IMG/VR virus record: IMGVR_UViG_3300012988_000001
Span: 124,001 to 188,000 of that record
Strand: one strand, 5' to 3'
DNA length: 64,000 nt
Part shown: one piece after another, positions 1 to 64,000 of the stretch
How the letters are laid out: every line of letters begins with the position of its first letter
How positions within the stretch are numbered: the stretch's first letter is position 1
The notes under the pieces: model-generated
Told to the model about the DNA's origin: nothing
The model's database searches: none
What the model saw: the letters and a program-made list of their open reading frames with translations, nothing else
Translations under genes and position numbers: made by a program

Positions 1-2
1 TC

Positions 3-233
3 CACAACAACGGTGGTGAGGAATTCTTGTACAAAGTACTTGAGTACTTCAACATTCAGCGTGATACGGATGGTGAGCTAGAAGACCTAATTGTGAAAGT
101 GTACGATAAATTTGAAGGCACTGTGATTGGTGATATTGACCAGATGTTGAAAGACGGAACTTTAGAGCCTAAAGAAATCCGTGCATATGTGTCGAATCTT
201 CGCACAACTGAAGTTGCGAAAATGTTCTCATAA
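3..233 (+). CDS. 3' end of a hypothetical protein (truncated by window start)
   Basis: Frame is open from position 3 (HNNGGEEFLYKV...) to TAA at 231-233; the TTG at 27 is probably internal. Confidence 0.75.
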   Translation, partial: HNNGGEEFLYKVLEYFNIQRDTDGELEDLIVKVYDKFEGTVIGDIDQMLKDGTLEPKEIRAYVSNLRTTEVAKMFS

Positions 234-235
234 AT

Positions 236-266
236 TTGGGACAAAAAAGTAAAAATGTGATATACT
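236..266 (+). promoter_or_regulatory. Phage pre-replicative promoter (GGGACA-N17-TATACT, extended -10)
   Basis: TTGGGACAAA 236-245, TGTGA, TATACT 261-266; one of six copies of this motif. Confidence 0.8.
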
Positions 267-297
267 ATAGGTATCTGATGATTATTGAGATGAAATT

Positions 298-741
298 ATG
301 CGATATACTTGCGGAATAATATTTTATCGTGATGGTCAGATACTTATAGGACATACAACCGGACAAGATCATTGGGACTTACCTAAAGGTAAAACTGAAG
401 GTGAAGAAACATATAAAGAAGCGGCTGTTCGGGAGTGTTATGAAGAAACTGGTTTTGAGATATCCGAGAAGGATTTACTTTTTATTGGTGATGTATCATA
501 CCGAAAAGGAAAAAGACTTATATTGTTTTTCTATACCGCTAGATATAAGCCTGAACCTAGTGAATTGAAATGTATCAGTACTTACACTAATAAGTACGGA
601 CAGACTAAACCAGAATTGGATAAGTTTAGATACATTGATGTTGAGGACTGTGAATTGTATTTGACTAAACGAATGTGTAGCAGTATTGTCAAAGCTGTTA
701 AACAATTCCAGAAAAATAAAGGAAAAGAGAATGGAAGTTAA
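298..741 (+). CDS. NUDIX hydrolase (NudE-like)
   Basis: Nudix box GKTEGEETYKEAAVRECYEETG, preceded by WDLPK. Confidence 0.92.
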   Translation: MRYTCGIIFYRDGQILIGHTTGQDHWDLPKGKTEGEETYKEAAVRECYEETGFEISEKDLLFIGDVSYRKGKRLILFFYTARYKPEPSELKCISTYTNKYGQTKPELDKFRYIDVEDCELYLTKRMCSSIVKAVKQFQKNKGKENGS

Positions 742-1003
742 AATCTACGGACGCCTAACTGGTTGCCCTTATTGCACAAATGCGAAAGCAGTTTGTGAAC
801 AAAATAAATTCGATATGGAATTCATTGATATGGTTTCCACTGGTATGACTAAAGATGATCTATGTGAAATCGTAGGTAAGCCAGTAAGCACTGTTCCACA
901 AATCTTTGTTGATGGTGAATATGTTGGTGGTTACACTGAATTCGTTGCTCACCTCCGCTCTCTAAACGAGAAGAAAAAAGAAGATGACACAGACGATCAA
1001 TGA
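731..1003 (+). CDS. Glutaredoxin
   Basis: CPYC active site, TVPQIF and GGY motifs; start moved to ATG 731 (AAGGA upstream). Confidence 0.93.
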   Translation: MEVKIYGRLTGCPYCTNAKAVCEQNKFDMEFIDMVSTGMTKDDLCEIVGKPVSTVPQIFVDGEYVGGYTEFVAHLRSLNEKKKEDDTDDQ

Positions 1004-1232
1004 TTTTCATGCACAGTGTAAAGCACGTGCTGAAGAGTTAGCCAAACGATTGGGGGTAGATTTTCAACCTCTAGATGTAAACTCTATTGAAACTGCTGCA
1101 CGGAAACGTATGGCAGCACTCATGAAATATCGTGAGCGAAAAGAAGAGTATGATTCTCTTCTTGAAACAGTTTTCAAAGTACTAAGTCCAACGGAAGTGG
1201 TTGAAATTCTACGAAATACCCGTAATAAATAA
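984..1232 (+). CDS. Hypothetical protein
   Basis: 82-aa ORF with phage-like codon usage, overlapping the end of glutaredoxin. Confidence 0.7.
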   Translation: MTQTINDFHAQCKARAEELAKRLGVDFQPLDVNSIETAARKRMAALMKYRERKEEYDSLLETVFKVLSPTEVVEILRNTRNK

Positions 1233-1279
1233 TTATGAAGGAACAATCCTTCATGTTATAAAATTTTGGGAGAAATACT

Positions 1280-1522: not shown

Positions 1523-1528
1523 TAATTT

Positions 1529-8732: not shown

Positions 8733-10824
<2,092 letters not shown>

Positions 10825-34675: not shown

Positions 34676-36174
34676 TATTTGTTATCCTTATGTACTCTGT
34701 ACACAATATTTGGTTTTACTACATCTGGTAGTGCTACTCGGTCTTTACTATTCACAAAACCTGTCATATACTGATCTGCACCTGTTCTTGGTAGACGACC
34801 ACCGTAATTGAACTGTTTCCAAGACTTAGTTTCATCACTATACCTCCAAAGTGTTACTGGTGTATAGTCAGTACGATAGTAGTACTCGCCATCACTAGGA
34901 TCAGATGGGAATTGTGTACCTTCATCAACCACTCCACGTGCTGGTGGGATTTCAGGACGAATATCTTCTGGATTATAAATGTTTTCTATAACACTATTGC
35001 TCACAAAATGGTCTTGATGTTCAAGTGGGGCTGGAATCCACGTTTTATCGTCATCTAGCACTTGATATAAAGCTGGATTGGAGTATAATACATAGAAACC
35101 ATCAACATTGGACGGTACAGACTCTTCGGTTGTGTATGGTAGGTCACAAATTAGCCAACGCTTTTCATCTTTGTAGTACTGGTAAAGTGAATAACCACAA
35201 ACCGATGCAGAATCAGACATAAAGTAGAAGTCGCCATCTTTTGGACGTTTGGGGAAGTCACTACCAATCTTAGATTTAGCGTCTACCCATTCACCGTTAA
35301 CTTCTTCCTTAAGTACTGGTAACGTTTCTTTCCAGAAGAACATGTTTTTTGATGGTTTTTTAGGGAATGTTGTGCCACTAAAGATTTCACGTGCTTCACT
35401 GTATAAATCCTCACGATCATTATACAAATGTTCATTTGTGAAGTGAATATATGGTACTTCATCATCAGCTTGTGCTACAATAGCGTTCATGATAGCCATC
35501 TCGTTGTCATAATCGCTTTGTTCACTTCCATCACCGGAACTGTTACCATTACCATTGTTCGGATCATCTGGATTATCAGGGAAGTTGTTACTACCACCAC
35601 CGATGATATCAGCGTATTCTGGACTATCAGTAAGTGGTTTAACACGTAGTTTGAAAATGTGATGTTGCCATGTTACAGAATAACCTTCTGAAGTGCGAAA
35701 GGCATCTTGAACAACATAAAAACGGTTCAACCCACTATCTTTACCTAGAACATCAAAATCACGAAGGTTAGGTAGTTCTATAACATCACCGGGTAAGATT
35801 TTTCTTCCCACACGCTGCATCATAGTGTTATAATGAACCGTAATATCCATTGTGTTGAAGTTGAAGAATAAACCCGGTATCTTTAAGTCTGGTGTTGCTT
35901 CTTGAACTTGGTATACTGCTGGAATTGTAATTGCTTGTAGGTCGTATGCACGGTCTGGTGTTTCACCAAAAATTAAGTCACCGATGCTTGACACATCGAT
36001 TGAGTTACCTGTATAATCAGGCATAGTTAGGTCGGTGTTTCCTGTGTTTTGTTTAGGTCCGATATAACAGTACAAAAACATGTCAACACCACCCATGTTG
36101 TACTGATCGGCAATTGCACCGTCGATGAACTTATAGTCATCATGACGGCCTTTTTTCCACATTTGATATGCCAT
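34675..36174 (-). CDS. gp14: Neck/head-closure protein (T4 gp14-like) with C-terminal repeat extension
   Basis: DLIFGE, PGDVIELP, FYVV core; next to gp15; late promoter upstream. Confidence 0.7.
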   Translation of the reverse strand: MAYQMWKKGRHDDYKFIDGAIADQYNMGGVDMFLYCYIGPKQNTGNTDLTMPDYTGNSIDVSSIGDLIFGETPDRAYDLQAITIPAVYQVQEATPDLKIPGLFFNFNTMDITVHYNTMMQRVGRKILPGDVIELPNLRDFDVLGKDSGLNRFYVVQDAFRTSEGYSVTWQHHIFKLRVKPLTDSPEYADIIGGGSNNFPDNPDDPNNGNGNSSGDGSEQSDYDNEMAIMNAIVAQADDEVPYIHFTNEHLYNDREDLYSEAREIFSGTTFPKKPSKNMFFWKETLPVLKEEVNGEWVDAKSKIGSDFPKRPKDGDFYFMSDSASVCGYSLYQYYKDEKRWLICDLPYTTEESVPSNVDGFYVLYSNPALYQVLDDDKTWIPAPLEHQDHFVSNSVIENIYNPEDIRPEIPPARGVVDEGTQFPSDPSDGEYYYRTDYTPVTLWRYSDETKSWKQFNYGGRLPRTGADQYMTGFVNSKDRVALPDVVKPNIVYRVHKDNK

Positions 36175-36204
36175 TTTAAGTCTCCAAAATGTTTATATGT
36201 AACG

Positions 36205-36246
36205 TATTTATTTTTTTGGGACAAACGAACATTTATGTGATATAAT
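36205..36246. promoter_or_regulatory. Composite divergent promoter: late TAAATA (minus) + GGGACA-N17-TATAAT (plus)
   Basis: TATTTA 36205-36210, N7, GGGACA 36218-36223, TATAAT 36241-36246. Confidence 0.85.
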
Positions 36247-36286
36247 CATTTTATATCGTGCTAAATTAACAAAGGAGAATGCACTT

Positions 36287-38591: not shown

Positions 38592-41500
38592 TTATCCTTT
38601 AATTAGCGTAGGTAGGATAGTACCCGGAATTTGTAGTGATGAACTATAAGTACTTAAAGGTATTACTGGATAATTATTTGCATAATCAACCATCTTATCT
38701 TCTTTCCCTAGGTTCAATCCTGTTCCCAAATATCCATCAGGATAGTAATTCTCAACTGTTCCATTAATAGCACGTAAAGCGTTACCGTTTTTACGTAGAA
38801 GCATCTGCTCTCCATTTAAGGAAATAACATCACCTTCTGTACTATTCGCACCACTTACCACATTACCATCAACTGACACTGATCCAACATTTGTTGGTTG
38901 TGAAACCACGGTAATGTTTTCAACGCTGTCATTGGTAATTACTGTAACTCTACTAGGAGAGGTAACATAAACATCGTCAACTAGTGGTAATGCATATGTC
39001 CAATAAGCGTCTGTAGTGTCTGTAGCTGGTACAAGTACTGGCTGGATTGTTGAAGTGTTGAATTCATAAACGAATATTTGTAGTGAATCGGTCATTTTAG
39101 TACGAACAAGTTCGCCTAGAACACCTTCACCATAAATCGGCTGGTAATAGCCGTGGTCAACACCATCAATAATTTCATTAGAAATATACCACACATCATA
39201 ATCATCATCGCTGAATCCATCAGTGTATTCTCCACCATCCAACATAACATCATAGAACACGTCATAATCCATCGCATCGACCGCGTAGGAGCGATTTGCG
39301 GCATATTTGACATAACTACCAGCATTGAATTCGGCATCGTTAAAACTCGTTACACGAAGCACAGTGATGCTTGTGTGATCTGAAACAGCCGACCATTCTG
39401 AACCATTAGTTGAATATGTTTGTGAGAATACTAATCCACCGATTGTAACGTTACGTCCACTTACCGCAGTAACTTTAAACATAGTAGGTCTGTTTCCAGT
39501 TCTAATATTGTTTTCAGTTAGGATAGTATGGAAAGTACCGTCAGCCGCAACAGCATCATAATCTTTACCTTCTGGGGTAAACACCATAACATTATCACCA
39601 ACTTTCAATCCATGATTGCTTCCTAGTCTAACAACACCATTTACGTTAATTACATCATACACATGGTTGACGTACTTAATTTCATCATGATACATGTTAG
39701 TTCTATCCATCAATGCAATTGCTTCTGCATAGCGAGGAATACTCACAACTGCTTCTGCTTTGTTATATGGGTTGAGGGTAATGAAACCTTCAACTTGGAA
39801 GTTACCTTGATCTTTAAGTTGTGGCATATTTGCCGCATCGTATGAATACCCATCAACCGTAAATCTAAGTTGAGACATATTTTGCTTGTTCGGGTTTAAC
39901 TCTGAAATGTCAATGAAGACTGAATCTTGAGTTGTGTTTACCGTATCAATAGCAGATAGCTCAATTCTCTTAGTTTGTGATTCTAGTGCTAAATTATCAA
40001 ATGAGTTCATGTCATCATAATAAACATTGGAGTTAAATGAAGTCATGATTTGTTGATAATCAGAGTACAATGGATTGTTTTTATCCATTGGTAGATCATC
40101 TAGATTTGGTTCACCAACAAATACGTTATCACCTTGAGTGATGAATTGGTCTTGCATGAAGTCTTCTAGACTTTGATTGAATGGTACAGTGAAATAATCC
40201 CCTGCATCATTACGAATCGATACCAACTTACGTGGAACCATTACCATACAGAATGCATCAAAATCGCGATTATCAAGAATTGCTTCTGCAAACGCATAGT
40301 GATCTGAATTATCCTTATAGTAACTATTACGCATAGCTGTTAGTACTAAAAGAGTGTCGTTGTAGTGATCAGTATTAATTGTCACTCCACCAATGCCATC
40401 ATCTTCTGTTGTTTCAATCATCCAGCAATATAAACCGTACTCATGTGCCAAATAGAAGTAAATGTCATTATCTGAATAGGTTGGGTTCTGAGCTTTCGCC
40501 ATAGAAACAAACTTATCAAATAATTCTCTGGTATGCATTACATAACCAAAGTTTTCACCGTTACTTGGTGCGAAACCAAATGGTAGTCTAGTATTTGGGT
40601 TATCATCAATAGATATACCTTTAAACGGACAATCAACTTGATCTTCAATTGCATCAATATCATAAGAAGTATAAAGTCTCAATCTATTAGAAAGAGTATT
40701 AAACATTCTATATTTTTGCATAATATCAATAGAGTCATCGCTTGATAGAACTTCATTGGTTGCACTAATTACATCTTTTGTGAATTGTTCAGTAGCTGGA
40801 ACATCCTGTTCTAATGTTTCGTACATAGCTTGTATACCTGCGGCAACACTAGTAGACATATTAAAATCTGGATATTTTTGAGTTAGAATCGAACCAATTG
40901 CATTATTGATTTGACTTTCATTTGCCACTGGGAACGTATATTCATAACGTTGTAATTTATAATGGCTTCCTTTTGTTAAGAAATCTTGCTCATTACTCTG
41001 GAATTGCTTATTAACATCATCTAGAATTGCTGCTGCTGGCATATCTTCATCAGGTACACACTGAACATTATCATAATGCATAATAACATCAATTTCTTGG
41101 AATCTTCTATTCGGTAATTCGAAATCACTCGGTAGAGAACCATGAATTTCCCATTTATTGGTTACGGTGTTAAATTGTGCATATTCATAATCCCAGATAT
41201 CAGATTGTGTTTTAACCCACTTACCATTAACGAAAATATATCCAGTTGGATCTAAATCATTTAGTAAGCCATTAATTTCATCACTATCAGAAGTTTTCTG
41301 TTCAATCTGAGAACGAATCTTAGTACGATATGGTTTTACTTCTTCGAAATAAGATACGATTTGTCCAATTAGGTCTTCACTATTAGAATAGTTCTGTTTT
41401 AGAGATTGGTCTAAACCAACAATAAAGATATATGAAGTTTTAAACACCCAATCAACCACTTGTTGTTCAGTATGAACATACTTAACCATATCAAACACAA

Positions 41501-44500
41501 CGTCACTCTGATGCATGTCGAATGAATTTTTAAGTAAAGCTAGGGCTTTACGAACGTTTATTTCAACGTTGGTTAATTCACCATCTTCATTGTATTGAGT
41601 GTAGTTATTGTATAGTTGGTTGTTCAACTGTAAAGTACTATTCTGACGACCGATTGCAGTCCATAGAGAAACGTTACGTGAATAATCTTTACGGTACAAT
41701 GTCCAAACACCATCTGCATCTACAATACGAATGATATCACCAACCTGATAGTTTTTAGTATCAGCAATGTCTAGTGAAATTTCTGATGTATATTCGGTAT
41801 ATTCATCATATCCAACATCATACCAATCAGCTAATGACCAATACTGAGTCATATCTAGAGAAGTTCCTAGAGTTGCAATATAATCAGATTGCTTAATCAT
41901 TGAATGCTGACCTTCACCTTTATTCTCTAGTGTGATTGTAATCGCAGTTCCTGATGAACTAGGGTTATTCATTAGATGAATATAACCATCGTCATCGTAG
42001 TGTACGAAATACACACTGGTTGAATTTAGTGGTGATGGTAAAGTACCATTGGTGCTTACAAGAACTGCATCGTTTTCCAAGAATTTTTGTTCATTGGTAG
42101 CAATAACAAGTTGGTTGTTATAAGTTAGTACTTTAAATCCAACTTCATTTGGGTTAGTTTGTAATGTTTTAACATTGAATACATCATTCATTACAACGGT
42201 ATTAGTAGTCATGTTAATATGGCGATAAATGTCATTAGCTGAGTCCACGAATGTTCTACGAGCTTCAATGATATCTTTAAACCATACTTTAGATGAACCT
42301 AATCCCAATTCAGTTTGTGGATAATGCAATTCCTGTACTTGACCATTCAATAATGTTTCTTGACCCATTAATGAGTTCCATAGGGAATTCCAAATTTCAG
42401 GGTTGAAATTATAACTGTCACCTTCCTTACAAAGTTGATACTGTTCGTGTTTTACAACGTCATCTTGATCTTCTTTATAAGATATTGTTAAAATACTCTT
42501 ATCATCAGTAACTTCATATTGCATATCTGACATGATGAATGAAGTTTCAGAGATTGGTGCATACCAAGGCGTATTCAAAGCGAGTGGATCACGAATAATA
42601 CGAGAAATTTCTTGACAAGACTTATCGCGGTTCTTCACTTGCGGTACATATATACCATTTTTAACCCAGAAATAGTACTTACGTACATAAGATTGGGTAT
42701 GAGTATCATATATAATGAATTCACTATAGTTTTCTTCCAATGCAGTTCCACTAGGAACATATTCATTTTCAGTTTTGTTTAGTTTAGCCTGTTCATCACA
42801 GTATCTATCCCAATCATATGGTTCAACTGGAGATTCTACCCATTCATAGATATTAATATCACCATGTGGTAAGATTTTACCCCAATTCACTCGTTTGTAC
42901 TCAAGAGTTGCTTCATTATCAACATTACCATTCGAATCATAGATTGGACGGGTATAGTCAACAAAGTATGCTTCTCTCGTATCCCACCATACTGTACCTA
43001 CTTTATCAGAAGCCCATGCCATTTCCTCTTCACCATTGCTATTATACAATGCTGGGTCATGTGCACCAGTATATGTGACGTTAGTCATCGCTGGACCCGG
43101 TAAAATACCGTTAATTGGGTCATAAAGGTTAATATACAACTCAGTTACGTTAGTTAATGAATTATATGTAGTCGCTTTCTCGAATAAAGTACTTTCAGGT
43201 GCTGCAAAGCTATATTTCTTATTAATATAAGAATCTTTATCAGCAGATGTTGCGAATCTTGATTCATAACGATACAATACAGGCTGTGGAGCACTGAATG
43301 TCATATCAATTGCAATGTTAACTGGAACAATTAGTTCATTAGCTGCTGAACCTGAATTATAATATTGCATTTCTGCTTTAAGTAGGTCAGGCATATAGTT
43401 AGTTTGGTCAACGAAGTAGAAATAATCACCATCAACCATTCCGTGTGCTGCACTTAACGTTAGTTTACAGAATTGTGTAGGCATATTATCTTCACTAGGA
43501 ATTGCCGTAATTGCAGTTAGCTTGATATTGGTATTAATTAACTCAAAGATGTTCCATGTATCAGACATATCCTGTAGCATCCAAACAGAGTTCGGTACTT
43601 CACCAGATTTAGCCATATACGATAGACGGTCAGTGTAAGCAGTTGTAAAATCTTTAGTACTGTAATCAATTTCATCTAGTGTTACTGGTCCAATATCAGG
43701 TAGATTGATGTTATCGCTTCTTCCTGAACGCATTGGGAATGCAAAATTACCTTTAGGACGAGTAATCCAACGACTATCCTCACCTTGTTCACCAAAGTAT
43801 ACAATATTATTTCCATTTCCATTACTAGTTGCATTTTTATCAAATGTAATTAGTTGTGGTTGCTGTTTAAATTCATTGTTTATCAATTGGAACTGTAGTG
43901 ATTTTTTGCCATAGATATTACCATACGTACCAACTTTAAACGCCCACTCTTGTAGTGCTTTATATTCATCAGTATTATATGATTTAGATACACGTAATAC
44001 ACGTTCTAGTACTTGATTTGAACCTTTATCTTTAATAAACCCTTTATAGAAGTTGACACGAGCAGGTTCACTGGTAATCATTCGAGTTAAGTAATCTCTC
44101 GACTGATATCCAATTAGGTGACGACCTAAATCACGTAGTGAAACATCCGATACCGGTTCTTCCACATCATAATAATGTTGGAAGTCAGTGACAAGAGTCT
44201 CAAAGTCTGGTAAAGTACCAGCTTCCAACACAATAAAGCCCGGAGCTTCTAAACGACCATTCCATGAACCAGTTACATAACCATACATACGAATTAATTC
44301 TTGTACTGAACCGTATACTGGAATATATATGGAATCACCAAATATGGTAACATCATCGAATACTACTGCATGTTCATATGCAACTAGGCTCACGCGAATT
44401 AACGCCATACGCTTATCAACATCATCAGCTAGACGTACTGTGAATACGTTACCCAAACGAGTTGTTTGAATTTCGTATGGACGAATACCAGTATTCTCAT

Positions 44501-47500
44501 CATCTAGTAGTGACCATACACCACCATTAAATTGAGTTACAGATTGAACTGAACCGAATTCAGATCCAAACTTAGCACTTGCAGTACTAGGAGATACAGA
44601 AATATATTCACCACGTACTGGAGATGTTAAACTCCAACTAACAAAATCTTTACCGATTTGTGTCCAATCCTGAATTACACCGTCTGTGTTTTGGTCTTCA
44701 AAAATCCAACCTTGTGCTTCTAGGAATTTACCATAAGAACAAAGGAAAGTGTAAACATCTTGATAAGAATTGAATACAGTTCCGTATGCATATTCTTGGA
44801 CTTTAGTAGTGTAATCTGAATAGGTAACAACAACACGATTTCCATCCGTGTATGTAGTTTTCTTTCCATTTTTATTAGGAACTAGAGTTTTAAATGTTGC
44901 CCCAACAAGGTCATAGCCATCAAGTTGATAAGCTGAACCATTCCAAGTGATTTTTACAGCACTTAGAGTTTCAGTACGTATAGCAGAACTCTTAACTAGA
45001 CCAATATTTTGACTTTCGCTGGAAATTAGACCAAATGATTCAGAATAGAAACTAAGTTGATCTTTCTTGGTGAATGCACCAAGTTTGTGACCAATATTAA
45101 TATAAGATGAGCGTAGCACATCACCATATTTTTTAGTTACATCCATATTCTGATACAATAGATGATCAGTAATAGCCATTTGGTAACCTAGTACTCTGTT
45201 ATTTTGTTCACCGTTGACTAATGTATTACTATTGAAGTTTAAACGAATATTTGATTCACCATATAGGAATTGAACATCATCTGTATAAACTTTCTTTAAA
45301 GTACTACCACGTGTATCATAGAAGTAGTTTGCAAATTGTGCAGGTTTAGCACGATATAGTAACATTGCTTGGTCATATGCAAACATAGCAGTGTTCATGT
45401 ATGTGAATTCCATATCACCCATATCACCATAAGCCCAAGGCTCTGCACGGTGATTTAGAGCACCTGAAACTAATCCAAGAACCTCTGGTGCAATCAATTC
45501 ATAAGTATAAAGAGTATCACCATTAGACGCAGTTCCGTTAGGAGTTAGGGTGAATGGTTGTTTACCAAAACGCTTATATTTGTCATACTGTCCAGCACGA
45601 GAGCCGAATAGGATTTTACCTAGACTTGCATCACCTTTGAATGTTCCAACATCCCATAGTCCACTAGGAACTAGATCGCCATTTTCATCAACTACTTCAG
45701 CCGTATAAACCGTAATAGATTCAGTTTCAGATAAACGAACAATAGTAGGTTCGTATTCTTGGTTCCACCAATCTGGACGTTGAGCAAAACCAAACATTTC
45801 CCACGGATGAGTTGATGGGCGGTAAGTACCGAACATGTCAGTATAAATTCCACGCCAAGAACCACGTGCTGGAATTGTAGTAGGAATCCCGTCTACAACA
45901 TAAGTAGTTCCAGTATAGTTCCAAGTTAGCCAATTAGATTGGTCATAGTTGTTTGTACTGTTATTAATTCCGTTAGTTGCAATAAAATTAATGTAACCAC
46001 GTAGTAAAAGAGTGTTGTACTCTGTTGCACTATAATCTGTATCTTGGAAGAATGGTGTAGGGAATAGATCACTAGCATCCATTGGTGGCTGATAATCTAC
46101 AACTTTAAATGCATTATCAATACTATTGAAAATACGATTTTCAAGTTCATAGATAACATCATCCATTTTGTCAATGCCGTTAATTACTTTATAGGATTTT
46201 GAAATAACACCAGTATGGCTTACGTTGTAACAACCTAATTCTTTACCAGCATACATATACGTAGCTTTCTGTGGTGAGAATGCTTTTAGAATACCCATAA
46301 ATTGCGGAGTCGGTGGAATGAAGGTACGACTCGTACCTACAGTACTACCAACGCTATCAAGATAGAATGGGAATGTATTGTTTTTACCAACATTGATAAT
46401 GTCAAATACTGCATCTACAATATTAGATGCACTGTTTGATAAGAAACCAGATTTATCATCTTCATATAGATTAATCATTTGGGTATTAAATTTGTTTAAG
46501 AAACGGAAATACTCATTTTGTAAGAACATGAATGCTTCGAAAAGATCAATATTTTCGTTAGCAGTGTTTAGCATTAGTGGAAGCATAGATGCTTCATTCT
46601 GAATAATAAACGTACCAACTGAGTTATCAACCAAGCCAGCTTCTAAACGTTCTTCATAGTTATTGAAATCGTTAACACTACCAGTAGTAATGTTTTTACC
46701 TACAACATCACGAAAATGAAGAGAATAATCACCCTGATGAATGTATTTGATAGATTCATTATATGGGTTATTTTTCAAGTTCGTTGGGATTTCATATGCA
46801 CCTAGATTAAAATCAGGAACAATATCTTTACTATAAGTACGGATTGTTAGTACTGAATCTTCATCTAGATTGATTGAAGAATCGATTACGATTTCATTCA
46901 AATAACCGTTACTATCAATTGTTTTAGTGAATTTATCAGTTTCTTCACCATTAATAATAACTTCTAAAATATCATTAGGGTTATTGGTATCAATTTTTTG
47001 TGCCAATTCGAAATTATGGTTATACACATCATATGCAACAGCATTATCATTGGTTCTGTGCCAATCTAGGAAAGTACTGTTTGGTGCTTTATAATATTTG
47101 TATGTAGAATCTATATCACGAACATATGCATACATATTTTCTAGTGGATATTCGAAGTTTTCCATATCATTTACAGTGTCAAATACACGGTACATGGATG
47201 TTTTGGTCATTTCTGGAACTTGGAATACATACTGTTTAGACACGTCTTGAGAACGAACCCAATCAGTTTTTAGGTTCTGTGTAAATTCTCCATTTTCTTC
47301 GCCAATAACATTATAATAGTACAAACCCGGAATTTCAGTGATTACACCTAGTTTATCAAATTCATAACGAACACTTTGAAGGAAGTTTTCAAATACATAG
47401 TAATTGTAAGAACTTAGTTCAACATTAGCACCATAAATTGAGCTAAAATTGTAATCGAAGTTAATTTTAAGCCCAAATAGTGATGAACCACTGAAAGTTG

Positions 47501-48611
47501 AACTTGGATAAATTTGACTATCACTTAATTTGTTACCATTGCGGTCATACAATTGGAATAGAGGGAAGGTATTAACACTATCTTTATTCTGTGCACGTGT
47601 CCACATAGTCCCTGTCCAGTACATTGAAGTATTGCCATAGGTATTACCTGATTTTACCAATACTACGTCACCAACTTGTGGCTCACCACTTGGACGGGTT
47701 GGGGTTTCTTCATCTTCATCTAATGCTAGACCGTATACGCGTGAACCATCATCCATAGACTTAATATAAACCTTATAGATACGGTTGTTTTCGCCGGGGT
47801 TACCAATACTTGTGAATAACACACGATCACCAGCTTTTAATACGAATCCATCAACACGGATATTATTGGATTGATTTTTGTTAACGATATCTTCTGGTTT
47901 CACTGAATCAGAGAGATAGTCAACTACACCACGGAACTTCGTACCGTAGTTTAATAGTTCAATATTTTTATTGTACTCAATAATTGGAGCCTGTGCACGA
48001 GCAAAACGCGTGTCTTGGGCCAATTCGTCAGTTAGTACTGTACCATCAGGTAGAGTTTGGCCTACAGTGTACCAGAAGTTTTGTAATGACCATTTGTTGC
48101 CATTTAAAGCACCACGTTCCATTACAACATAATCAGGAGCAACACCATATTCGTTATTAGTGTCCCATAGATATGTACTATAGTTAATTAGTTTGTTAGG
48201 GTTAATTGGTGGAGTCCAAGAATAAAATTTACCATTGAATAGGCGGTCTTGGTTTTCCGCTAGGCAGCCGTAATGCTCTAGATAACCAACTAGATCTTCA
48301 TAAAATTGTAGGCTGCGAATGCTTAGGTCTTCATTTTTTGATACGTAAGCAGGACTAAGCTGATATGCTTGTCTTTGTTCTGTTAATTCTTTGATAAAAA
48401 TCTTACCGGAGGCAGCAGGGGAGCTACTATCACCGATATATCCATCGACAATCTCTTGTTCAGCAGGGTTGAACCACTGTTGAATAATATCATCACAAAA
48501 AGTTTGGATCTGCTCTAAGCCTTGCATCCATTCTGGTAGTCTTTTTATGAATAATTTTTTATTAACAGCTTCAGCTACTTCTGAGGGCTGGAATTTAAAT
48601 TCGTTAGCCAT
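38592..48611 (-). CDS. Giant (3339 aa) virion structural protein, probable baseplate wedge component
   Basis: Own late promoter, follows gp6, aromatic/beta-rich, EEVKPYRTKIR motif; function inferred from position. Confidence 0.75.
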   Translation of the reverse strand: MANEFKFQPSEVAEAVNKKLFIKRLPEWMQGLEQIQTFCDDIIQQWFNPAEQEIVDGYIGDSSSPAASGKIFIKELTEQRQAYQLSPAYVSKNEDLSIRSLQFYEDLVGYLEHYGCLAENQDRLFNGKFYSWTPPINPNKLINYSTYLWDTNNEYGVAPDYVVMERGALNGNKWSLQNFWYTVGQTLPDGTVLTDELAQDTRFARAQAPIIEYNKNIELLNYGTKFRGVVDYLSDSVKPEDIVNKNQSNNIRVDGFVLKAGDRVLFTSIGNPGENNRIYKVYIKSMDDGSRVYGLALDEDEETPTRPSGEPQVGDVVLVKSGNTYGNTSMYWTGTMWTRAQNKDSVNTFPLFQLYDRNGNKLSDSQIYPSSTFSGSSLFGLKINFDYNFSSIYGANVELSSYNYYVFENFLQSVRYEFDKLGVITEIPGLYYYNVIGEENGEFTQNLKTDWVRSQDVSKQYVFQVPEMTKTSMYRVFDTVNDMENFEYPLENMYAYVRDIDSTYKYYKAPNSTFLDWHRTNDNAVAYDVYNHNFELAQKIDTNNPNDILEVIINGEETDKFTKTIDSNGYLNEIVIDSSINLDEDSVLTIRTYSKDIVPDFNLGAYEIPTNLKNNPYNESIKYIHQGDYSLHFRDVVGKNITTGSVNDFNNYEERLEAGLVDNSVGTFIIQNEASMLPLMLNTANENIDLFEAFMFLQNEYFRFLNKFNTQMINLYEDDKSGFLSNSASNIVDAVFDIINVGKNNTFPFYLDSVGSTVGTSRTFIPPTPQFMGILKAFSPQKATYMYAGKELGCYNVSHTGVISKSYKVINGIDKMDDVIYELENRIFNSIDNAFKVVDYQPPMDASDLFPTPFFQDTDYSATEYNTLLLRGYINFIATNGINNSTNNYDQSNWLTWNYTGTTYVVDGIPTTIPARGSWRGIYTDMFGTYRPSTHPWEMFGFAQRPDWWNQEYEPTIVRLSETESITVYTAEVVDENGDLVPSGLWDVGTFKGDASLGKILFGSRAGQYDKYKRFGKQPFTLTPNGTASNGDTLYTYELIAPEVLGLVSGALNHRAEPWAYGDMGDMEFTYMNTAMFAYDQAMLLYRAKPAQFANYFYDTRGSTLKKVYTDDVQFLYGESNIRLNFNSNTLVNGEQNNRVLGYQMAITDHLLYQNMDVTKKYGDVLRSSYINIGHKLGAFTKKDQLSFYSESFGLISSESQNIGLVKSSAIRTETLSAVKITWNGSAYQLDGYDLVGATFKTLVPNKNGKKTTYTDGNRVVVTYSDYTTKVQEYAYGTVFNSYQDVYTFLCSYGKFLEAQGWIFEDQNTDGVIQDWTQIGKDFVSWSLTSPVRGEYISVSPSTASAKFGSEFGSVQSVTQFNGGVWSLLDDENTGIRPYEIQTTRLGNVFTVRLADDVDKRMALIRVSLVAYEHAVVFDDVTIFGDSIYIPVYGSVQELIRMYGYVTGSWNGRLEAPGFIVLEAGTLPDFETLVTDFQHYYDVEEPVSDVSLRDLGRHLIGYQSRDYLTRMITSEPARVNFYKGFIKDKGSNQVLERVLRVSKSYNTDEYKALQEWAFKVGTYGNIYGKKSLQFQLINNEFKQQPQLITFDKNATSNGNGNNIVYFGEQGEDSRWITRPKGNFAFPMRSGRSDNINLPDIGPVTLDEIDYSTKDFTTAYTDRLSYMAKSGEVPNSVWMLQDMSDTWNIFELINTNIKLTAITAIPSEDNMPTQFCKLTLSAAHGMVDGDYFYFVDQTNYMPDLLKAEMQYYNSGSAANELIVPVNIAIDMTFSAPQPVLYRYESRFATSADKDSYINKKYSFAAPESTLFEKATTYNSLTNVTELYINLYDPINGILPGPAMTNVTYTGAHDPALYNSNGEEEMAWASDKVGTVWWDTREAYFVDYTRPIYDSNGNVDNEATLEYKRVNWGKILPHGDINIYEWVESPVEPYDWDRYCDEQAKLNKTENEYVPSGTALEENYSEFIIYDTHTQSYVRKYYFWVKNGIYVPQVKNRDKSCQEISRIIRDPLALNTPWYAPISETSFIMSDMQYEVTDDKSILTISYKEDQDDVVKHEQYQLCKEGDSYNFNPEIWNSLWNSLMGQETLLNGQVQELHYPQTELGLGSSKVWFKDIIEARRTFVDSANDIYRHINMTTNTVVMNDVFNVKTLQTNPNEVGFKVLTYNNQLVIATNEQKFLENDAVLVSTNGTLPSPLNSTSVYFVHYDDDGYIHLMNNPSSSGTAITITLENKGEGQHSMIKQSDYIATLGTSLDMTQYWSLADWYDVGYDEYTEYTSEISLDIADTKNYQVGDIIRIVDADGVWTLYRKDYSRNVSLWTAIGRQNSTLQLNNQLYNNYTQYNEDGELTNVEINVRKALALLKNSFDMHQSDVVFDMVKYVHTEQQVVDWVFKTSYIFIVGLDQSLKQNYSNSEDLIGQIVSYFEEVKPYRTKIRSQIEQKTSDSDEINGLLNDLDPTGYIFVNGKWVKTQSDIWDYEYAQFNTVTNKWEIHGSLPSDFELPNRRFQEIDVIMHYDNVQCVPDEDMPAAAILDDVNKQFQSNEQDFLTKGSHYKLQRYEYTFPVANESQINNAIGSILTQKYPDFNMSTSVAAGIQAMYETLEQDVPATEQFTKDVISATNEVLSSDDSIDIMQKYRMFNTLSNRLRLYTSYDIDAIEDQVDCPFKGISIDDNPNTRLPFGFAPSNGENFGYVMHTRELFDKFVSMAKAQNPTYSDNDIYFYLAHEYGLYCWMIETTEDDGIGGVTINTDHYNDTLLVLTAMRNSYYKDNSDHYAFAEAILDNRDFDAFCMVMVPRKLVSIRNDAGDYFTVPFNQSLEDFMQDQFITQGDNVFVGEPNLDDLPMDKNNPLYSDYQQIMTSFNSNVYYDDMNSFDNLALESQTKRIELSAIDTVNTTQDSVFIDISELNPNKQNMSQLRFTVDGYSYDAANMPQLKDQGNFQVEGFITLNPYNKAEAVVSIPRYAEAIALMDRTNMYHDEIKYVNHVYDVINVNGVVRLGSNHGLKVGDNVMVFTPEGKDYDAVAADGTFHTILTENNIRTGNRPTMFKVTAVSGRNVTIGGLVFSQTYSTNGSEWSAVSDHTSITVLRVTSFNDAEFNAGSYVKYAANRSYAVDAMDYDVFYDVMLDGGEYTDGFSDDDYDVWYISNEIIDGVDHGYYQPIYGEGVLGELVRTKMTDSLQIFVYEFNTSTIQPVLVPATDTTDAYWTYALPLVDDVYVTSPSRVTVITNDSVENITVVSQPTNVGSVSVDGNVVSGANSTEGDVISLNGEQMLLRKNGNALRAINGTVENYYPDGYLGTGLNLGKEDKMVDYANNYPVIPLSTYSSSLQIPGTILPTLIKG

Positions 48612-59197: not shown

Positions 59198-59247
59198 AGT
59201 GAGGTGGGACACGGATCGTCCTATGAATTTACATGGAGTGTTACAAT

Positions 59248-60093
59248 ATGATAACCAAACCGAAGCGTAAGAAATATTTGAATAACGCTGATTTACTAAG
59301 AGAAATTCATCTCAGTAAAATGTCATACTGCTGGCTCATTGATGAGTCGTATAGCATGTATGATTACATAGTCTTTGATGTTAGTGAGATTGATGAAGAA
59401 TTGCTTGAGAAAGCAAGTGCTGCACGTATCAAACGTCTTAACAATGAAACAATTGAAAATATTCGTTCAACACAGGGTCTTTCTGCTAAAAAAGCTAAAG
59501 AATACGCTGATGCACACGGATTAGTACTAACCACTGTACCTATTGATGAAGTTGTTATTCGCGTAATTACCGATGAACATATTCCCGATGAGGGTACTGG
59601 TAAGATTCGTGTTAACTTCGAACCATTCAAACATTACATCGTAGATGATAATGCCGTTTTTTATGAAGTTGCTCGTTCACACTGGCTAGGTGATACCGAT
59701 ACCGGGGAGTTTTGTTTAACTCACGGAAGAATGACCAATGAATTAGGAAAAATGTTCATTAAACTTGCAGAAGAAATTTCCCATAAAACTAATTACCGAA
59801 ATTATACGTACTTAGATGAAATGATGGGTGATGCAAGAATACAATTAGTCAAAAACGCATTGCTTTTTAAAGAAAGCATTTTGTATAAAAAAGACAAACC
59901 TGCTGTTCAATTAAATCCTTTCTCTTACTATACATCTTTCGTCAATAATGCATTCCGTTCTGTTTTGAATACAGAAAAGAATGTACGCAATATTCGTGAT
60001 GACTTACTTGAATTAAATGGCTTTACGCCAAGTCACACACGACAAATTGAAATTGAAATGAAAATGATGGAAGGTAAGAATGGCTCTATTTGA
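59248..60093 (+). CDS. gp55: Late-transcription sigma factor (T4 gp55-like) with a large insertion
   Basis: YLNNADLL, LGKMFIKLAE...NYRNYTYLDEM.GDA, NPFSYYTSFVNNAF; ATG 59248 has a GGAG SD. Confidence 0.9.
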   Translation: MITKPKRKKYLNNADLLREIHLSKMSYCWLIDESYSMYDYIVFDVSEIDEELLEKASAARIKRLNNETIENIRSTQGLSAKKAKEYADAHGLVLTTVPIDEVVIRVITDEHIPDEGTGKIRVNFEPFKHYIVDDNAVFYEVARSHWLGDTDTGEFCLTHGRMTNELGKMFIKLAEEISHKTNYRNYTYLDEMMGDARIQLVKNALLFKESILYKKDKPAVQLNPFSYYTSFVNNAFRSVLNTEKNVRNIRDDLLELNGFTPSHTRQIEIEMKMMEGKNGSI

Positions 60094-61111
60094 TAAAGCA
60101 GTAACGTTCACTGATATTCATCTAGGATTGAAGAATAACAGTAAAGAACATAACACAGATTGCGTTAACTTCGTAAAATTCATGATTAATGAAGCCAAAG
60201 AACGTGATATAAAAATTTGTATCTTTATGGGAGATTTTTTCCATAACAGAAGTAACGTTAATATCAGTACTCTAAACTACGGTCTAGAAGTAATGAACCT
60301 ACTTAACGATAACTTTGAAAAAACATACTTCCTTGTCGGAAACCATGATATGTACCATAAGAACAAACGTGACATTACTAGTATTAACATGGCACAGGCG
60401 TTCACCAACATCGAATTCATTAATAAGATGCAAACAATCGATGACTGTACTTTCATTCCTTTTATGATTGATGATGAGTACAAACAATTGCCATCACTAA
60501 CCAGCAAATATGTTTTCGGTCACCTTGAATTACCCGGTTACCTTCTAAACAAAATGGTTGAGATGCCAAATCATGGTAAAGAAACACAAGAGTCTTTCAA
60601 CGGCTGTGAATATGTCTTTAGTGGTCACTTCCACAAACGACAATCTAAAATCACACCAAGCGGTACTCGCGTAATTTATACTGGCAACTGCTTCCCTCAC
60701 AACTTCTCAGATACTTGGGATGATGCACGTGGTATTATGTTCCTAGAACATGGAAAAGAACCACAATTTAAAGCATGGGAAGATGCACCTAAATATAGGA
60801 CTTTCACTCTTTCGGAATTACTTAATGAGCCTTCTTATTACGTTCAAGACAACGTAGTTGCTAAAGTTCAGATTGATATTCCAGTAAACATGAATGAAAT
60901 CTCTTATATTCGAGAGGTATTCACTAAGCTATACAATGTTCGTGAATTCAACATTGTAAACAGCAGGAAAGCACTACAAGAGAGTTTAGAATACGGTGAA
61001 GTGGAAACAAGTACTGAATCAGTAGATGAAATCGTACTTAAACAAATCCAAGAAATCGATTCTCCTATGTTTGATAAGAATCTTCTAACACAAATTTATA
61101 CATCACTTTAA
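60080..61111 (+). CDS. gp47: Recombination nuclease subunit (gp47/SbcD/Mre11)
   Basis: DIH, GDFF, GNHD, GH, SGHFH metallophosphoesterase motifs. Confidence 0.95.
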   Translation: MALFDKAVTFTDIHLGLKNNSKEHNTDCVNFVKFMINEAKERDIKICIFMGDFFHNRSNVNISTLNYGLEVMNLLNDNFEKTYFLVGNHDMYHKNKRDITSINMAQAFTNIEFINKMQTIDDCTFIPFMIDDEYKQLPSLTSKYVFGHLELPGYLLNKMVEMPNHGKETQESFNGCEYVFSGHFHKRQSKITPSGTRVIYTGNCFPHNFSDTWDDARGIMFLEHGKEPQFKAWEDAPKYRTFTLSELLNEPSYYVQDNVVAKVQIDIPVNMNEISYIREVFTKLYNVREFNIVNSRKALQESLEYGEVETSTESVDEIVLKQIQEIDSPMFDKNLLTQIYTSL

Positions 61112-61122
61112 TGGAGTAAAGA

Positions 61123-63279
61123 ATGTTAACCATAAAACGAATTACAATGAGAAACTTCTTCTCATTCGGTAATGCACCACAAGAACTTGAATTTCAAGGT
61201 AGAGATATCTCTCTAGTACTAGGCCAGAACAACGATGTGGTTGTTGAAGGTGGTGATAGTGCTGGTCGTCGGAATGGCGTGGGAAAATCTGCTATAATTC
61301 AGGGACTAGTATTCGGGTTATATGGTAAAAGTGTTGGTAATGATATTAAAATCCCTAACCTAGTTAATAAAACTAACACGAAACAGTGTGAAGTAATTGT
61401 CGAATTCGAAAAAGACGGTCAAGAATACCGTATAGAGCGTGGGCGTAGTCCCACGTATTTTAATTTCCTAACTATCAAGGATGGAAATGTAATAGATGAT
61501 GATTCTAGAGGTGAAAAGAAGGATACCCAAGAAGAACTCAATGAGATTCTAGGTATTTCCCAGACACTTTTCGAACACATTGTTGTACTAAACGCCAACG
61601 TAGACCCATTTCTATCACTATCTGCACAAAAGCAGCGTGATATGATTGAAGAACTACTTGGTATTACCCAACTTACTGAAAAAGCAGAGCTACTTAAGGA
61701 TATGCAAAAGGATTCTAAGAAGACTGCTGAACAAGAGAAGTTTAAAATCGATACATTGATTGCGTCCAATGAACGTATTCAGAAAAGTATTGAGAATCTT
61801 CAAACACAAGCCAATACTTTCGAGTCAAATAAACTCAATAAGATTGAATCTCTTAAAACACAGTTGACAGAGTTTGATTTTGCTGATAAATTTGGTTTTG
61901 AATCATTATATGATAGTGCTAAAGAGATGGAAGAAGCAATTGAGCATAATAATAAGCGTTCAGTACTTGAGAATCGTTTGAATTCTTTGATGCAGAAGCG
62001 TGAACAATATGACCAACAGCTTCAAACCAACAAAGTGTTAGTGCTAAACAAGATTAATGAGCTAAAAGCTATTGATATTAGTGCGGAATTAGCATTACAT
62101 GAAGAATTAGATGTGTGGTATCAATTAGAAGGTATTCTAAAACAAAATACCAGTACTAAAGTGTTCAAAACACAGACTATCAAACAAACTGAGTCTGAAT
62201 TAGTACGCTTGAATGATTCCCTCACTAAAGAATACAACAAATTGAAAACAATTGAAGATAGCAAATGTCCAATGTGTGATGGTGAATTGAAAAATGACCA
62301 TAATCATTCAGAAATGATTGTTAAAATAAAAGATACAATTGAGGATTTATCTTCTCAGATATTACAAGCGGAATATAACATTTCTGTTATCACTGAAGAG
62401 ATTGATGACCTTGAAATTTTTGAAATGCCACCCAAACCAGTGACTAAGTACAGTACTCTAGCAGAAGCTAAACTTCATGAGCACATGTTAGCTGAGAATA
62501 CAGCGAAATATGAAGCAGAAGAAGTGAATATCTATGACGAGGAACTAATCAGTACTTATACTGAGTTGGAAGGAACTGAATTGAAGGAATATGACGTAGT
62601 ATTCAGTACTCATGAAGTACAGCAGCTTGAAATGAAGTATAAGTCCCTAAAGGAACAATTACAGCGTGAAGAAAGTAATGCTAACCCATATTTCGACCAA
62701 ATTGAGACATTGAAGACTGATTCATTGCAGGTTGTAGACTATAGTCTATATAATGAGATGGAAAAGCTAGCTACACACCAAGATTTCTTGGTTAAGCTAT
62801 TACTCAATAAAGATTCTTATGTTCGTAAGCGTATTATCGAGCAAAACATCACATTCTTGAATAGTAGATTACAATTCTACATCGAGCAATGTGACTCTGA
62901 ACACTTTGTGAAGTTCATGAACGACCTAAGTGTTGAGATTACCCTAAATGATCAGTCCTATGACTACAAGCAATTGTCTCGTGGGGAGCGTACACGTGTA
63001 AACGTGGCCTTGTCATTGGCATTTAGAGACACTTATGAGTCATTATACCAAGGAATCAACCTTATCATGATTGATGAGATGATTGATGTGGGTCTAGATC
63101 CGTCTGGTATCACTCGTATGTGGACAATCTTTGCTGATTTAGCAGTAATTCAGCGTAAAAACGTCTTTGTTATCTCTCATAAAGAGGAATTACTAAGTAA
63201 GACGGACAATATCTTGAAGATTGTCAAAGAAGATGGTTTTAGTACTATCGAATATTCATCACTTGATGACATGTTTTAA
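61123..63279 (+). CDS. gp46: Recombination ATPase subunit (gp46/SbcC/Rad50)
   Basis: NGVGKS Walker A, coiled coil, CPMC zinc hook, LSRGE signature, IMIDE, ISH. Confidence 0.95.
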   Translation: MLTIKRITMRNFFSFGNAPQELEFQGRDISLVLGQNNDVVVEGGDSAGRRNGVGKSAIIQGLVFGLYGKSVGNDIKIPNLVNKTNTKQCEVIVEFEKDGQEYRIERGRSPTYFNFLTIKDGNVIDDDSRGEKKDTQEELNEILGISQTLFEHIVVLNANVDPFLSLSAQKQRDMIEELLGITQLTEKAELLKDMQKDSKKTAEQEKFKIDTLIASNERIQKSIENLQTQANTFESNKLNKIESLKTQLTEFDFADKFGFESLYDSAKEMEEAIEHNNKRSVLENRLNSLMQKREQYDQQLQTNKVLVLNKINELKAIDISAELALHEELDVWYQLEGILKQNTSTKVFKTQTIKQTESELVRLNDSLTKEYNKLKTIEDSKCPMCDGELKNDHNHSEMIVKIKDTIEDLSSQILQAEYNISVITEEIDDLEIFEMPPKPVTKYSTLAEAKLHEHMLAENTAKYEAEEVNIYDEELISTYTELEGTELKEYDVVFSTHEVQQLEMKYKSLKEQLQREESNANPYFDQIETLKTDSLQVVDYSLYNEMEKLATHQDFLVKLLLNKDSYVRKRIIEQNITFLNSRLQFYIEQCDSEHFVKFMNDLSVEITLNDQSYDYKQLSRGERTRVNVALSLAFRDTYESLYQGINLIMIDEMIDVGLDPSGITRMWTIFADLAVIQRKNVFVISHKEELLSKTDNILKIVKEDGFSTIEYSSLDDMF

Positions 63280-63285
63280 AAACTA

Positions 63286-63310
63286 AAGGGAGCATTAGCT
63301 CCCTTTTTTT
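63286..63310. terminator. Bidirectional terminator
   Basis: AAAGGGAGC-ATTA-GCTCCCTTTTTTT; the EndoVII stop lies within it. Confidence 0.85.
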
Positions 63311-63789
63311 ATATTAAGCATATCCAGCTTACCTTCTTTTATTAATTTACGAGCTTGATTGGCTCTTTTCTTAACATTACTCTCTGGAACAACGCCAAAT
63401 GACTCTAAAATGTCGCATTGTTGTTTAGCAGGTAGTGCTTTATACTTTTTAACATCAACTGATAGTGCTGTATGATGAATTACCATCTCTTCTTCAGGGA
63501 TAGATCCGTTTCTCTCTAAGTAATCTGCTAAATTTCTTAGTACTTCATAAAGTGGCTTATCAGTTAAGTGTTTCATGTACCTATTAAAGCTGTTAGTTAC
63601 TTTCCCTTCCCATGCGTTGCATTCATTTTGTAATACTTCACGACAATGCTGGTGGCCTTGGTGATAGTGATCAAGTACTGGTTTGGTAATTACTTCTTTT
63701 GTGATTGGATCTATGCCATTCTGCTTTTTCAGCAAATCGTTACGGTACTTTGCCGCATCCTTTGCATCCTTTAATCGTTTTTTACTCAT
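63295..63789 (-). CDS. gp49: Endonuclease VII-like Holliday junction resolvase
   Basis: QNG....PVLDHYH...REVL..ECNAWEGK...LRNLADYLE; C-terminal ..LESFG.....N...R. Confidence 0.85.
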   Translation of the reverse strand: MSKKRLKDAKDAAKYRNDLLKKQNGIDPITKEVITKPVLDHYHQGHQHCREVLQNECNAWEGKVTNSFNRYMKHLTDKPLYEVLRNLADYLERNGSIPEEEMVIHHTALSVDVKKYKALPAKQQCDILESFGVVPESNVKKRANQARKLIKEGKLDMLNIKKGS

Positions 63790-63821
63790 AATAGTACTTC
63801 CTTAAAATAATTATTATGTAG

Positions 63822-63863
63822 TATTTACATTTTTGGGACAAAACCAGTTTTATGTCCTATAAT
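63822..63863. promoter_or_regulatory. Composite divergent promoter: late TAAATA (minus) + GGGACA-N17-TATAAT (plus)
   Basis: TATTTA 63822-63827, N7, GGGACA 63835-63840, TATAAT 63858-63863. Confidence 0.85.
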
Positions 63864-63869
63864 ATAGTT

Positions 63870-64000
63870 AACCCAGTGTGGAGGCGTCAGCCTACGAATG
63901 AATCCTGATCCTATCGAAAATGTAGATGGCAGATGAGCAGACCACACGTGCGAAGTGCAGAAGAAACCCGTTAGGAGTTGGCATAGTTAATACCACCCAC
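63870..64000 (+). ncRNA. Candidate structured non-coding RNA or long leader (runs off window)
   Basis: Starts at the predicted TSS; about 50% GC; GTGTGG/CCACAC closing stem with nested hairpins; no ORF longer than 13 codons. Confidence 0.4.

Follow-up and report, generated by a model that had tools for sequence, protein, structure and literature searches.

Iterated palindromes are known from cells, where their purpose has been debated for decades. In cyanobacteria, HIP1 (highly iterated palindrome 1; GCGATCGC) occurs far above its compositional expectation, in all frames and between genes, across lineages in which single sites come and go; there is no agreed function, and suspicion falls on a methyltransferase. 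In enterobacteria, the short palindrome GATC, written by the orphan N6-adenine methyltransferase Dam and used with MutH and SeqA, serves as a genome-wide mark, with long empty stretches avoided. Here we describe the palindrome AGTACT in a 64,000-nucleotide stretch of a viral genome (hereafter the window; positions 124,001 to 188,000 of IMG/VR record IMGVR_UViG_3300012988_000001, 366,160 bp). Like HIP1, AGTACT lies far above expectation in all frames and in intergenic DNA, and it is found clade-wide with turnover of sites. Whereas HIP1 is a cellular, 8-bp, GC-rich word enriched up to ∼100×, AGTACT is viral, 6 bp long, AT-rich and enriched 5–14×, and it coexists with an extreme purging of other palindromes. 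By analogy, HIP1 is the nearest known phenomenon, with AGTACT as its viral, AT-rich, 6-bp variant in a palindrome-avoiding genome. AGTACT is also the site of ScaI and Eco255I, a contiguous palindrome typical of type II enzymes; phages normally avoid type II sites, whereas the RaK2-like clade to which this genome belongs instead maximises this one.

A query gene of the window matched this record at 100% amino-acid identity, and both ends of the matching locus recur exactly in the window. The window derives from a RaK2-like jumbo myovirus whose nearest cultured relatives, at ∼80% nucleotide identity, are Salmonella phages Munch, 7t3, SE_PL and PHA46 and Klebsiella phage fENko-Kae01; the jumbo myoviruses of Asterius-, Mimas-, Eneladus- and Alcyoneusvirus are remoter relatives. 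AGTACT occurs exactly 127 times in the window, which corresponds to one site per 504 bp or 1.98 per kb. Dinucleotide shuffles of the window (n = 100) gave 22.1 ± 4.4 sites and never more than 31, so that AGTACT is enriched 5.8×, the opposite of the depletion expected under restriction-site avoidance. The original prediction, read from the letters alone, had put the word at about 120 copies and roughly five times expectation, and the eight example positions it gave (35, 577, 6841, 13151, 29461, 37661, 49691 and 63241) are all true sites. Its estimate of ∼35% GC was low, as the window measures 37.9%, which hardly alters the expectation of ∼22 sites. Markov models of order 0, 1, 2 and 3 predicted 21, 22, 34 and 53 sites. 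An order-4 model came close to the observed count (113), which resembles the refuting condition set in the original prediction, but this is circular because 59% of all AGTAC pentamers in the window sit inside AGTACT. Among all 4,096 hexamers AGTACT ranked first, with about twice the count of the runner-up AAGTAC (68 copies). No further conserved base was found within ±12 bp of the window sites.

Open reading frames (ORFs), called mechanically, covered 96% of the window and held 126 of the 127 sites, on genes of both strands. As had been noticed from the sequence, the sites lie in different reading frames: 69 are in phase as AGT-ACT, 36 as xxA-GTA-CTx and 21 as xAG-TAC-Txx. Shuffling synonymous codons within each gene, with protein sequence and codon usage preserved, gave 38.1 ± 5.6 sites and a maximum of 53 in 500 shuffles, compared with 126 observed (z = 16.3). 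This was the highest z-score among 2,080 classes of hexamer and reverse complement, the next reaching 9.9. The excess was present in each phase (69 vs 23 for AGT-ACT, 21 vs 3.5 for xAG-TAC-Txx and 36 vs 11 for xxA-GTA-CTx), and 69 of 137 Ser-Thr dipeptides were spelled AGT-ACT, where single-codon usage predicts 16% (odds ratio ∼5). Synonymous shuffles used to compare the full word with its parts yielded 37.8 ± 5.8 full sites against 126 observed. With the same procedure, half-sites (AGTACV or BGTACT) numbered 174 against 158 expected, and GTAC without either matching flank 105 against 139. As half-sites and unflanked GTAC were near or below baseline, the enriched unit is the full 6-bp palindrome, and neither the AGTAC pentamer nor the GTAC tetramer could be the real unit. 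Codon usage and amino-acid sequence were ruled out as a cause by the per-gene and the pooled shuffles alike. A refuge effect from avoiding other words was also rejected: a constrained synonymous shuffle, forbidden to create any of 150 absent 4–6-mers, gave only 35.8 ± 5.2 AGTACT. The excess thus survived the comparison with codon-shuffled sequence that had been proposed as a check. Intergenic DNA pooled over loci of the clade contained 30 AGTACT in 21.4 kb, where 7.3 were expected (∼4×). None of the nine classes of one-letter neighbours of AGTACT was depleted, and the deamination neighbour AGTATT/AATACT stood at 92 copies against 79.8 expected (1.15×). Because the enrichment is seen in all phases, in intergenic DNA and after both shuffles, the AGTACT signal acts on DNA rather than translation.

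We compared stretches of 8–49 kb, parts of relatives' genomes rather than whole genomes, from Munch, A4, GAP32, XbC2 (five loci, 157 kb), fHe-Yen9-03, RaK2, XaC1 and IMG/VR contigs of the clade (loci L001–L011, L017, L020–L025, L031–L037, L100 and L107). In every sampled member AGTACT was the top hexamer (third in L023), at 5–14× expectation and 1.6–4.3 sites per kb, and the GCGC count was zero in all these loci. The word was enriched in each of the five separate XbC2 loci, and loci in which small genes with unknown roles or roles in nucleotide metabolism abound carried 3.3–4.3 sites per kb, compared with 2.5 in the structural block. The lowest density among the orthologous loci compared was that of A4. 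Nine outgroup loci were examined: PA5oct, Atu_ph07, Phosso and XacN1, whose baseplate wedge protein is 36–40% identical, and five metagenomic loci found via a second gene. None of the nine showed an AGTACT excess (0–3 sites vs 1–12 expected), GCGC was present at ∼0.3–1.6 times expectation, and outgroups of similar GC content were depleted of AGTACT. In Asterius-, Mimas-, Eneladus- and Alcyoneusvirus, the Munch group and XaC1, AGTACT is a highly iterated palindrome. As all sampled clade loci carry both traits and the outgroup loci neither, AGTACT excess and GCGC loss are joint derived characters of the RaK2-like clade. A literature search combining AGTACT or ScaI with these phages, jumbo phages and phage genomes found no description of the trait; the XbC2 paper and the RaK2 paper (PMC3622015) record odd restriction behaviour with no link to word usage.

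Between 26 and 43% of the window sites are conserved in five relatives, compared with 15–27% of all hexamers in the same codon phase. Retention was 43% in Munch (27% for random hexamers) and 39–42% in XbC2 and GAP32 (15–16%). Where a Ser-Thr pair is itself conserved, AGTACT was kept at 69% of positions in Munch, 82% in XbC2, 93% in GAP32 and 69% in Yen9-03, whereas AGT and ACT codons elsewhere predict 37–47%; A4 was the exception, with 44% kept and 41% predicted. At Ser-Thr pairs spelled otherwise in the window, a relative often has AGTACT. The proposed test of conservation at synonymous positions hence found sites retained above neutral expectation, A4 excepted. Excess retention together with turnover indicates that sites are favoured but individually replaceable, a pattern that fits weak selection or bias acting at many sites. 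None of 40 variants listed from the contigs of public runs fell in 19 AGTACT sites, where 0.76 would be expected, numbers too small for power.

The sites are also more evenly spaced than random placement would make them. In the window, the coefficient of variation (CV) of the gaps was 0.78, compared with 0.98 ± 0.08 for random placement, and only 8 gaps were shorter than 100 bp where 22.6 were expected. The gap CV was below 1 in 10 of 10 clade loci (combined Z = −4.1), which are partly orthologous and hence not independent, and other frequent hexamers had gap CVs of 0.94–2.4. Gap histograms showed depletion below 100 bp (0.56–0.85×) and an excess at 200–800 bp. The longest gap in the window, 2,349 bp, is not beyond random placement (mean longest gap ∼2,700 bp). 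By synteny, genes of the window encode thymidylate synthase, a long tail fibre, tail and baseplate proteins, a 3,339-aa virion protein, a ClpA-like ATPase, a gp55 late sigma factor and a gp46/47 nuclease, and the sites lie among them as follows.

1–64000, no strand: 127 AGTACT sites over the whole window, 126 in ORFs and in three codon phases
35–48, no strand: closest pair of sites, 8 bp apart (35–40 and 43–48)
24126–28403, minus strand: long tail-fibre gene, syntenic with Munch_252; 16 sites, 3.7 per kb, the densest long gene of the window
35318–37660, no strand: longest AGTACT-free stretch, 2,349 bp between site starts
38592–48611, minus strand: gene of the giant 3,339-aa virion protein; 16 sites, 1.6 per kb
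59233–63279, plus strand: homologues of the gp55 late sigma factor and the gp47/gp46 recombination nuclease, syntenic with RaK2_00082-84; 10 sites
63793–63798, no strand: the sole AGTACT of the window outside called ORFs

As the 10 sites at 59233–63279 show, non-structural genes also bear the word. The 3,339-aa ORF is a virion structural protein in relatives, and its length is kept across the clade and the outgroups.

To contrast phage with host DNA, we used a 50-kb sample of E. coli K-12. This sample contained 3 AGTACT (0.06 per kb) and 342 GCGC (6.8 per kb), compared with 1.98 and 0 per kb in the window; AGTACT is thus ∼30× denser in the phage, and with GCGC confined to the host sample the two words form opposite marks. 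The zero count of GCGC in the window compares with ∼83 copies expected. That it is lost uniformly, with hosts extending from Escherichia to Xanthomonas, points to a constant agent, perhaps a GCGC nuclease that the phages themselves encode and turn on host DNA. Absent from the window are GCGC, CCWGG and 139 hexamers; the original prediction was right that CCWGG and GGTACC are both missing. The absent words include 25 of the 64 possible 6-bp palindromes, among them AAGCTT, CCATGG, CTGCAG, CAGCTG, GGATCC, GTCGAC, GAGCTC and GGTACC, and the RaK2-like clade avoids about the same number (25 of 64). Some non-palindromic words with 9–15 copies expected are likewise absent (GACATC/GATGTC, TGCCCA/TGGGCA, CAGCTC/GAGCTG, GGCACC/GGTGCC and GAGGAG/CTCCTC), and GATC is depleted to 0.63×. 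Hexamers containing CCCGG or CCGGG occur in coding DNA at 4–5 times the synonymous expectation. The constrained shuffle reproduces this CCSGG excess (45.7 vs 51 observed), because Pro-Gly is forced into the CCSGG spelling once CCWGG is banned.

We consider it about as probable as not (roughly 50%) that AGTACT labels phage DNA as a positive tag, which selection maintains and which a clade-specific protein reads by recognising the hexamer. As near-matches are not favoured, the whole hexamer has to be recognised by some factor. Words of this sort, contiguous 6-bp palindromes with no flanking motif, are typically targeted by dimeric proteins that resemble type II restriction/modification enzymes. 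The reader would be a protein that binds such a palindrome on double-stranded DNA, probably as a dimer of the restriction/modification type, and that is active in all these infections. Since the hosts span Enterobacterales and Xanthomonas, it is more probably encoded by the phage than by the host. Weak selection at each site would keep one AGTACT every 0.25–0.6 kb. The tag may serve repair by discriminating strand or self, shield phage DNA from the phage's own nucleases against host DNA, or nucleate a DNA-coating protein; all three would fit the even spacing and the host contrast. The idea of a genome-wide self mark, put forward in the original prediction, gains from these data in that the signal is at the DNA level, clade-wide, synonymously retained and ∼30× denser than in the E. 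coli sample. The version in which a methyltransferase is coupled to repair is weakened by the C5 enzyme missing from three lineages, the C5 methylation seen at a CpG site in RaK2, the confinement of an N4 enzyme to two genera and the undepleted AGTATT.

Relatives encode several DNA methyltransferases (PMC5259590, PMC11273794, PMC11895373). In XbC2 we classified a C5-cytosine enzyme (PF00145), an N4-cytosine enzyme (PF01555, SPPY), a gamma-class N6-adenine enzyme (NPPF) and a small Dam-family N6-adenine enzyme (PF05869, NPPY), and we followed each by tblastn, where absence rests on thresholds and on counts per organism name. The C5-methyltransferase was found in Mimas-, Asterius- and Alcyoneusvirus, but at E ≤ 1e-30 it was absent from three AGTACT-rich lineages, the Munch group, Eneladusvirus and XaC1. 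Bisulfite sequencing of RaK2 detected C5 methylation at a CpG site (PMC3622015), and AGTACT contains no CpG. On its lineage distribution and this bisulfite result, the C5-methyltransferase was rejected as the AGTACT writer, and the route proposed for HIP1 fails the distribution test in this clade. In an Asteriusvirus subgroup (A4, JNE01, UE-S1, ph0011 and TH47) the enzyme is N-terminally truncated, matching residues 78–284. A4 hence combines a truncated C5 enzyme with the lowest AGTACT density and no excess retention at Ser-Thr, perhaps by coincidence, as lineages without any C5 enzyme keep the AGTACT excess. The N4-cytosine enzyme is confined to Mimas- and Eneladusvirus and the gamma-class enzyme is sporadic, and both were rejected as universal writers for this patchy occurrence.

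The Dam-family enzyme, in contrast, is the sole methyltransferase found in every AGTACT-rich lineage. The search for methyltransferases that had been recommended thus returned one family universal in the clade and three that are not. In the window's own contig its gene was located by a degenerate DNA pattern.

L100:1013–1543: Dam-family gene, 55% identical to Munch_090

This enzyme would be the most likely writer or reader of the tag, and AGTACT would probably be N6-methylated by it. An unmodified genome with an estimated 700–1,000 ScaI/Eco255I sites would be very exposed, and Eco255I exists in E. coli; the modification would also shield those sites from restriction of the ScaI/Eco255I type. 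The likeness to Dam and GATC lies in this sole universal methyltransferase and in the even, if only modestly so, spacing of sites. Unlike that system, GATC itself is at 0.63× in the window, and AGTACT is far more overrepresented than GATC is in E. coli. We identified no MutH- or SeqA-like reader in this analysis, and our literature search found no methylome of these phages. The order of genes at the Dam locus is conserved in Munch (L017:3442–5328, Munch_089-092) and XbC2 (L009:3471–5347, XbC2_55-58): a protein of unknown function, Dam, a cytidylyltransferase-like protein and a small protein of unknown function. In Munch, the first of these is phrog_16210 and the cytidylyltransferase-like gene overlaps the Dam gene. 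This layout may be a sign that adenine is modified in a more elaborate way.

Several observations weigh against a tag of this kind or against the part given to Dam in it. Homologues just as close to the Dam-family enzyme occur in Geobacillus phage PK3.6 and Clostridium phage phiCT19406C, neither with an AGTACT excess (1 site vs 3.7 expected for PK3.6, 4 vs 12.4 for phiCT19406C), and 118 unrelated viral loci (1.07 Mb) with the Dam catalytic motif contained 82 AGTACT against 87 expected. The family was therefore discarded as a general predictor of AGTACT. The link to the methyltransferase is weak, as it draws on a lineage distribution common to hundreds of clade-specific genes. Dam orthologues are 43–55% identical between genera, compared with 61–88% for the baseplate wedge, the one structural protein compared, and such divergence would be odd if the specificity were conserved. 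The genes beside Dam, which encode the cytidylyltransferase-like protein and two proteins of unknown function, showed no nuclease or reader domain and gave no informative domain or PDB match. The regularity of spacing is modest, and the loci in which it was tested are partly orthologous. Compensatory turnover, in which a lost site is replaced nearby, appeared as a trend in 4 of 5 comparisons and was significant for A4 alone.

A bolder form of the tag, which we put forward tentatively and would not expect to hold as a whole, is that RaK2-like phages write self and non-self into their sequence by a pair of contrasting words. Phage genomes would be held free of GCGC, and of a set of other palindromes, to let phage-encoded nucleases shred GCGC-rich host DNA, and AGTACT, perhaps N6-methylated, would be read by a clade-specific protein that protects, repairs or organises phage DNA alone. 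RaK2-like jumbo phages have no phage-nucleus shell gene and make neither hydroxymethylcytosine (HMC) nor glucosylated DNA; according to the RaK2 paper, the phage does not rely on these labels to set its DNA apart from that of the host (PMC3622015).

The main rival to a selected tag is a drive by biased repair or gene conversion, in which a site-specific mismatch enzyme of the very-short-patch type converts near-matches to AGTACT without benefit to the phage, a mechanism akin to proposals made for HIP1. The high turnover of sites, the independent convergence of Ser-Thr pairs on AGTACT in different lineages and the enrichment of intergenic DNA would all follow from it, and T4-like phages recombine heavily. 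Against it, the nine one-letter neighbour classes are undepleted, AGTATT/AATACT standing at 1.15×. Such a drive normally needs a C5-methyltransferase, which the Munch group, Eneladusvirus and XaC1 do not have, and the C5 methylation seen in RaK2 falls on a CpG site; no Vsr-like gene was seen adjoining any methyltransferase, and the deficit of closely spaced sites is not predicted. Thus weakened, the drive seems doubtful to us.

Like Chi, KOPS (FtsK-orienting polar sequences) and the uptake sequences DUS and USS (DNA uptake sequence and uptake signal sequence), AGTACT is a dense word that separates own from foreign DNA and, as proposed here, would be read by a dedicated protein. The kinship could be closer if AGTACT served to halt or attenuate a processive nuclease, whether a phage enzyme of the gp46/47 type or host RecBCD, which would then spare site-dense phage DNA and destroy host DNA, poor in AGTACT and rich in GCGC. 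The 30-fold contrast with E. coli, reversed for GCGC, the even spacing with few long gaps and the presence of gp46/47 homologues are compatible with such a role, as is a phage whose own DNA bears no HMC or glucosylation label (PMC3622015). Nothing in the analysis ties gp46/47 to AGTACT, and AGTACT is its own reverse complement, so that it cannot depend on orientation. Chi, KOPS, DUS and USS are asymmetric and oriented, and known Chi sequences are read on one strand. We know of no nuclease that stops at AGTACT in this manner and of no cognate machine for the word, and we regard this explanation as unlikely.

A preference of the phage type II topoisomerase for cleaving or binding AGTACT would account for the dyad symmetry around a 4-bp core, which matches a 4-bp stagger (A/GTAC/T), and the clade encodes topoisomerase II subunits. 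It is nonetheless quite improbable, as type II topoisomerases have weak, degenerate preferences, and here half-sites and other GTAC contexts are unenriched. Even harder to credit is a signal at the RNA level, with AGUACU carried by all transcripts from either strand: since 96% of the window is coding, transcription covers nearly all sites, but an RNA signal gives no reason for a palindrome (64 of 4,096 hexamers are palindromic) and does not explain frame-independent sites or intergenic enrichment. A side effect of codon usage, of the tRNAs that the phage supplies, of oligonucleotide bias or of refuge from avoided palindromes can be set aside almost entirely, since the favoured codons AGT, ACT, GTA and CTA, the tRNA-Ser(GCT) and tRNA-Leu(TAG) of relatives and the order-4 Markov value of 113 stand against shuffles, synonymous and constrained, that give 36–38 sites rather than 126, enrichment in three phases and intergenic DNA, half-sites at baseline and depletion of AGTACT in outgroups of similar GC.

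For the question of what iterated palindromes are for, a virus clade offers a small, genetically tractable system. Its members can be grown on E. coli, Salmonella and Klebsiella, ScaI digestion or methylation sequencing takes a day, and blocks of sites can be recoded. These jumbo phages are under development for therapy and biocontrol, where the 700–1,000 ScaI/Eco255I sites estimated per genome would be either an Achilles heel or the trace of an unrecognised protective modification. In metagenomes, AGTACT as top hexamer together with zero GCGC provides a signature of the clade. L093, an unrelated viral IMG/VR contig of 68% GC, had 5 AGTACT where 0.4 were expected, possibly through a local repeat or by chance.

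Other words also deviate from expectation in the window. TAAATA/TATTTA is strongly depleted inside genes (11 vs 73); the late promoters of CBB and GAP32 are reported to have the motif ATAAATA, which it matches. A-tracts are depleted in coding DNA (AAAAAA 47 vs 105; AAAATT 59 vs 103). Codon usage is odd, with CTA at 41% and CTG at 1% of Leu codons and AGT at 31% of Ser codons; the tRNA-Leu(TAG) and tRNA-Ser(GCT) genes of XbC2 (L007:48236–48320 and L007:35158–35245) would read CTA and AGT. Chi-like words are overrepresented on the sense strand relative to the synonymous shuffle, CTGCTGGT with 19 copies against 4.5 and GCTGGTGG with 6 against 1.8, the latter for example at 7208, 15121, 30744, 34940 and 63648 and as reverse complement at 10729, 25870, 26212 and 26599. 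This excess may be a codon-pair effect (NCT-GCT-GGT) or a real enrichment of Chi.

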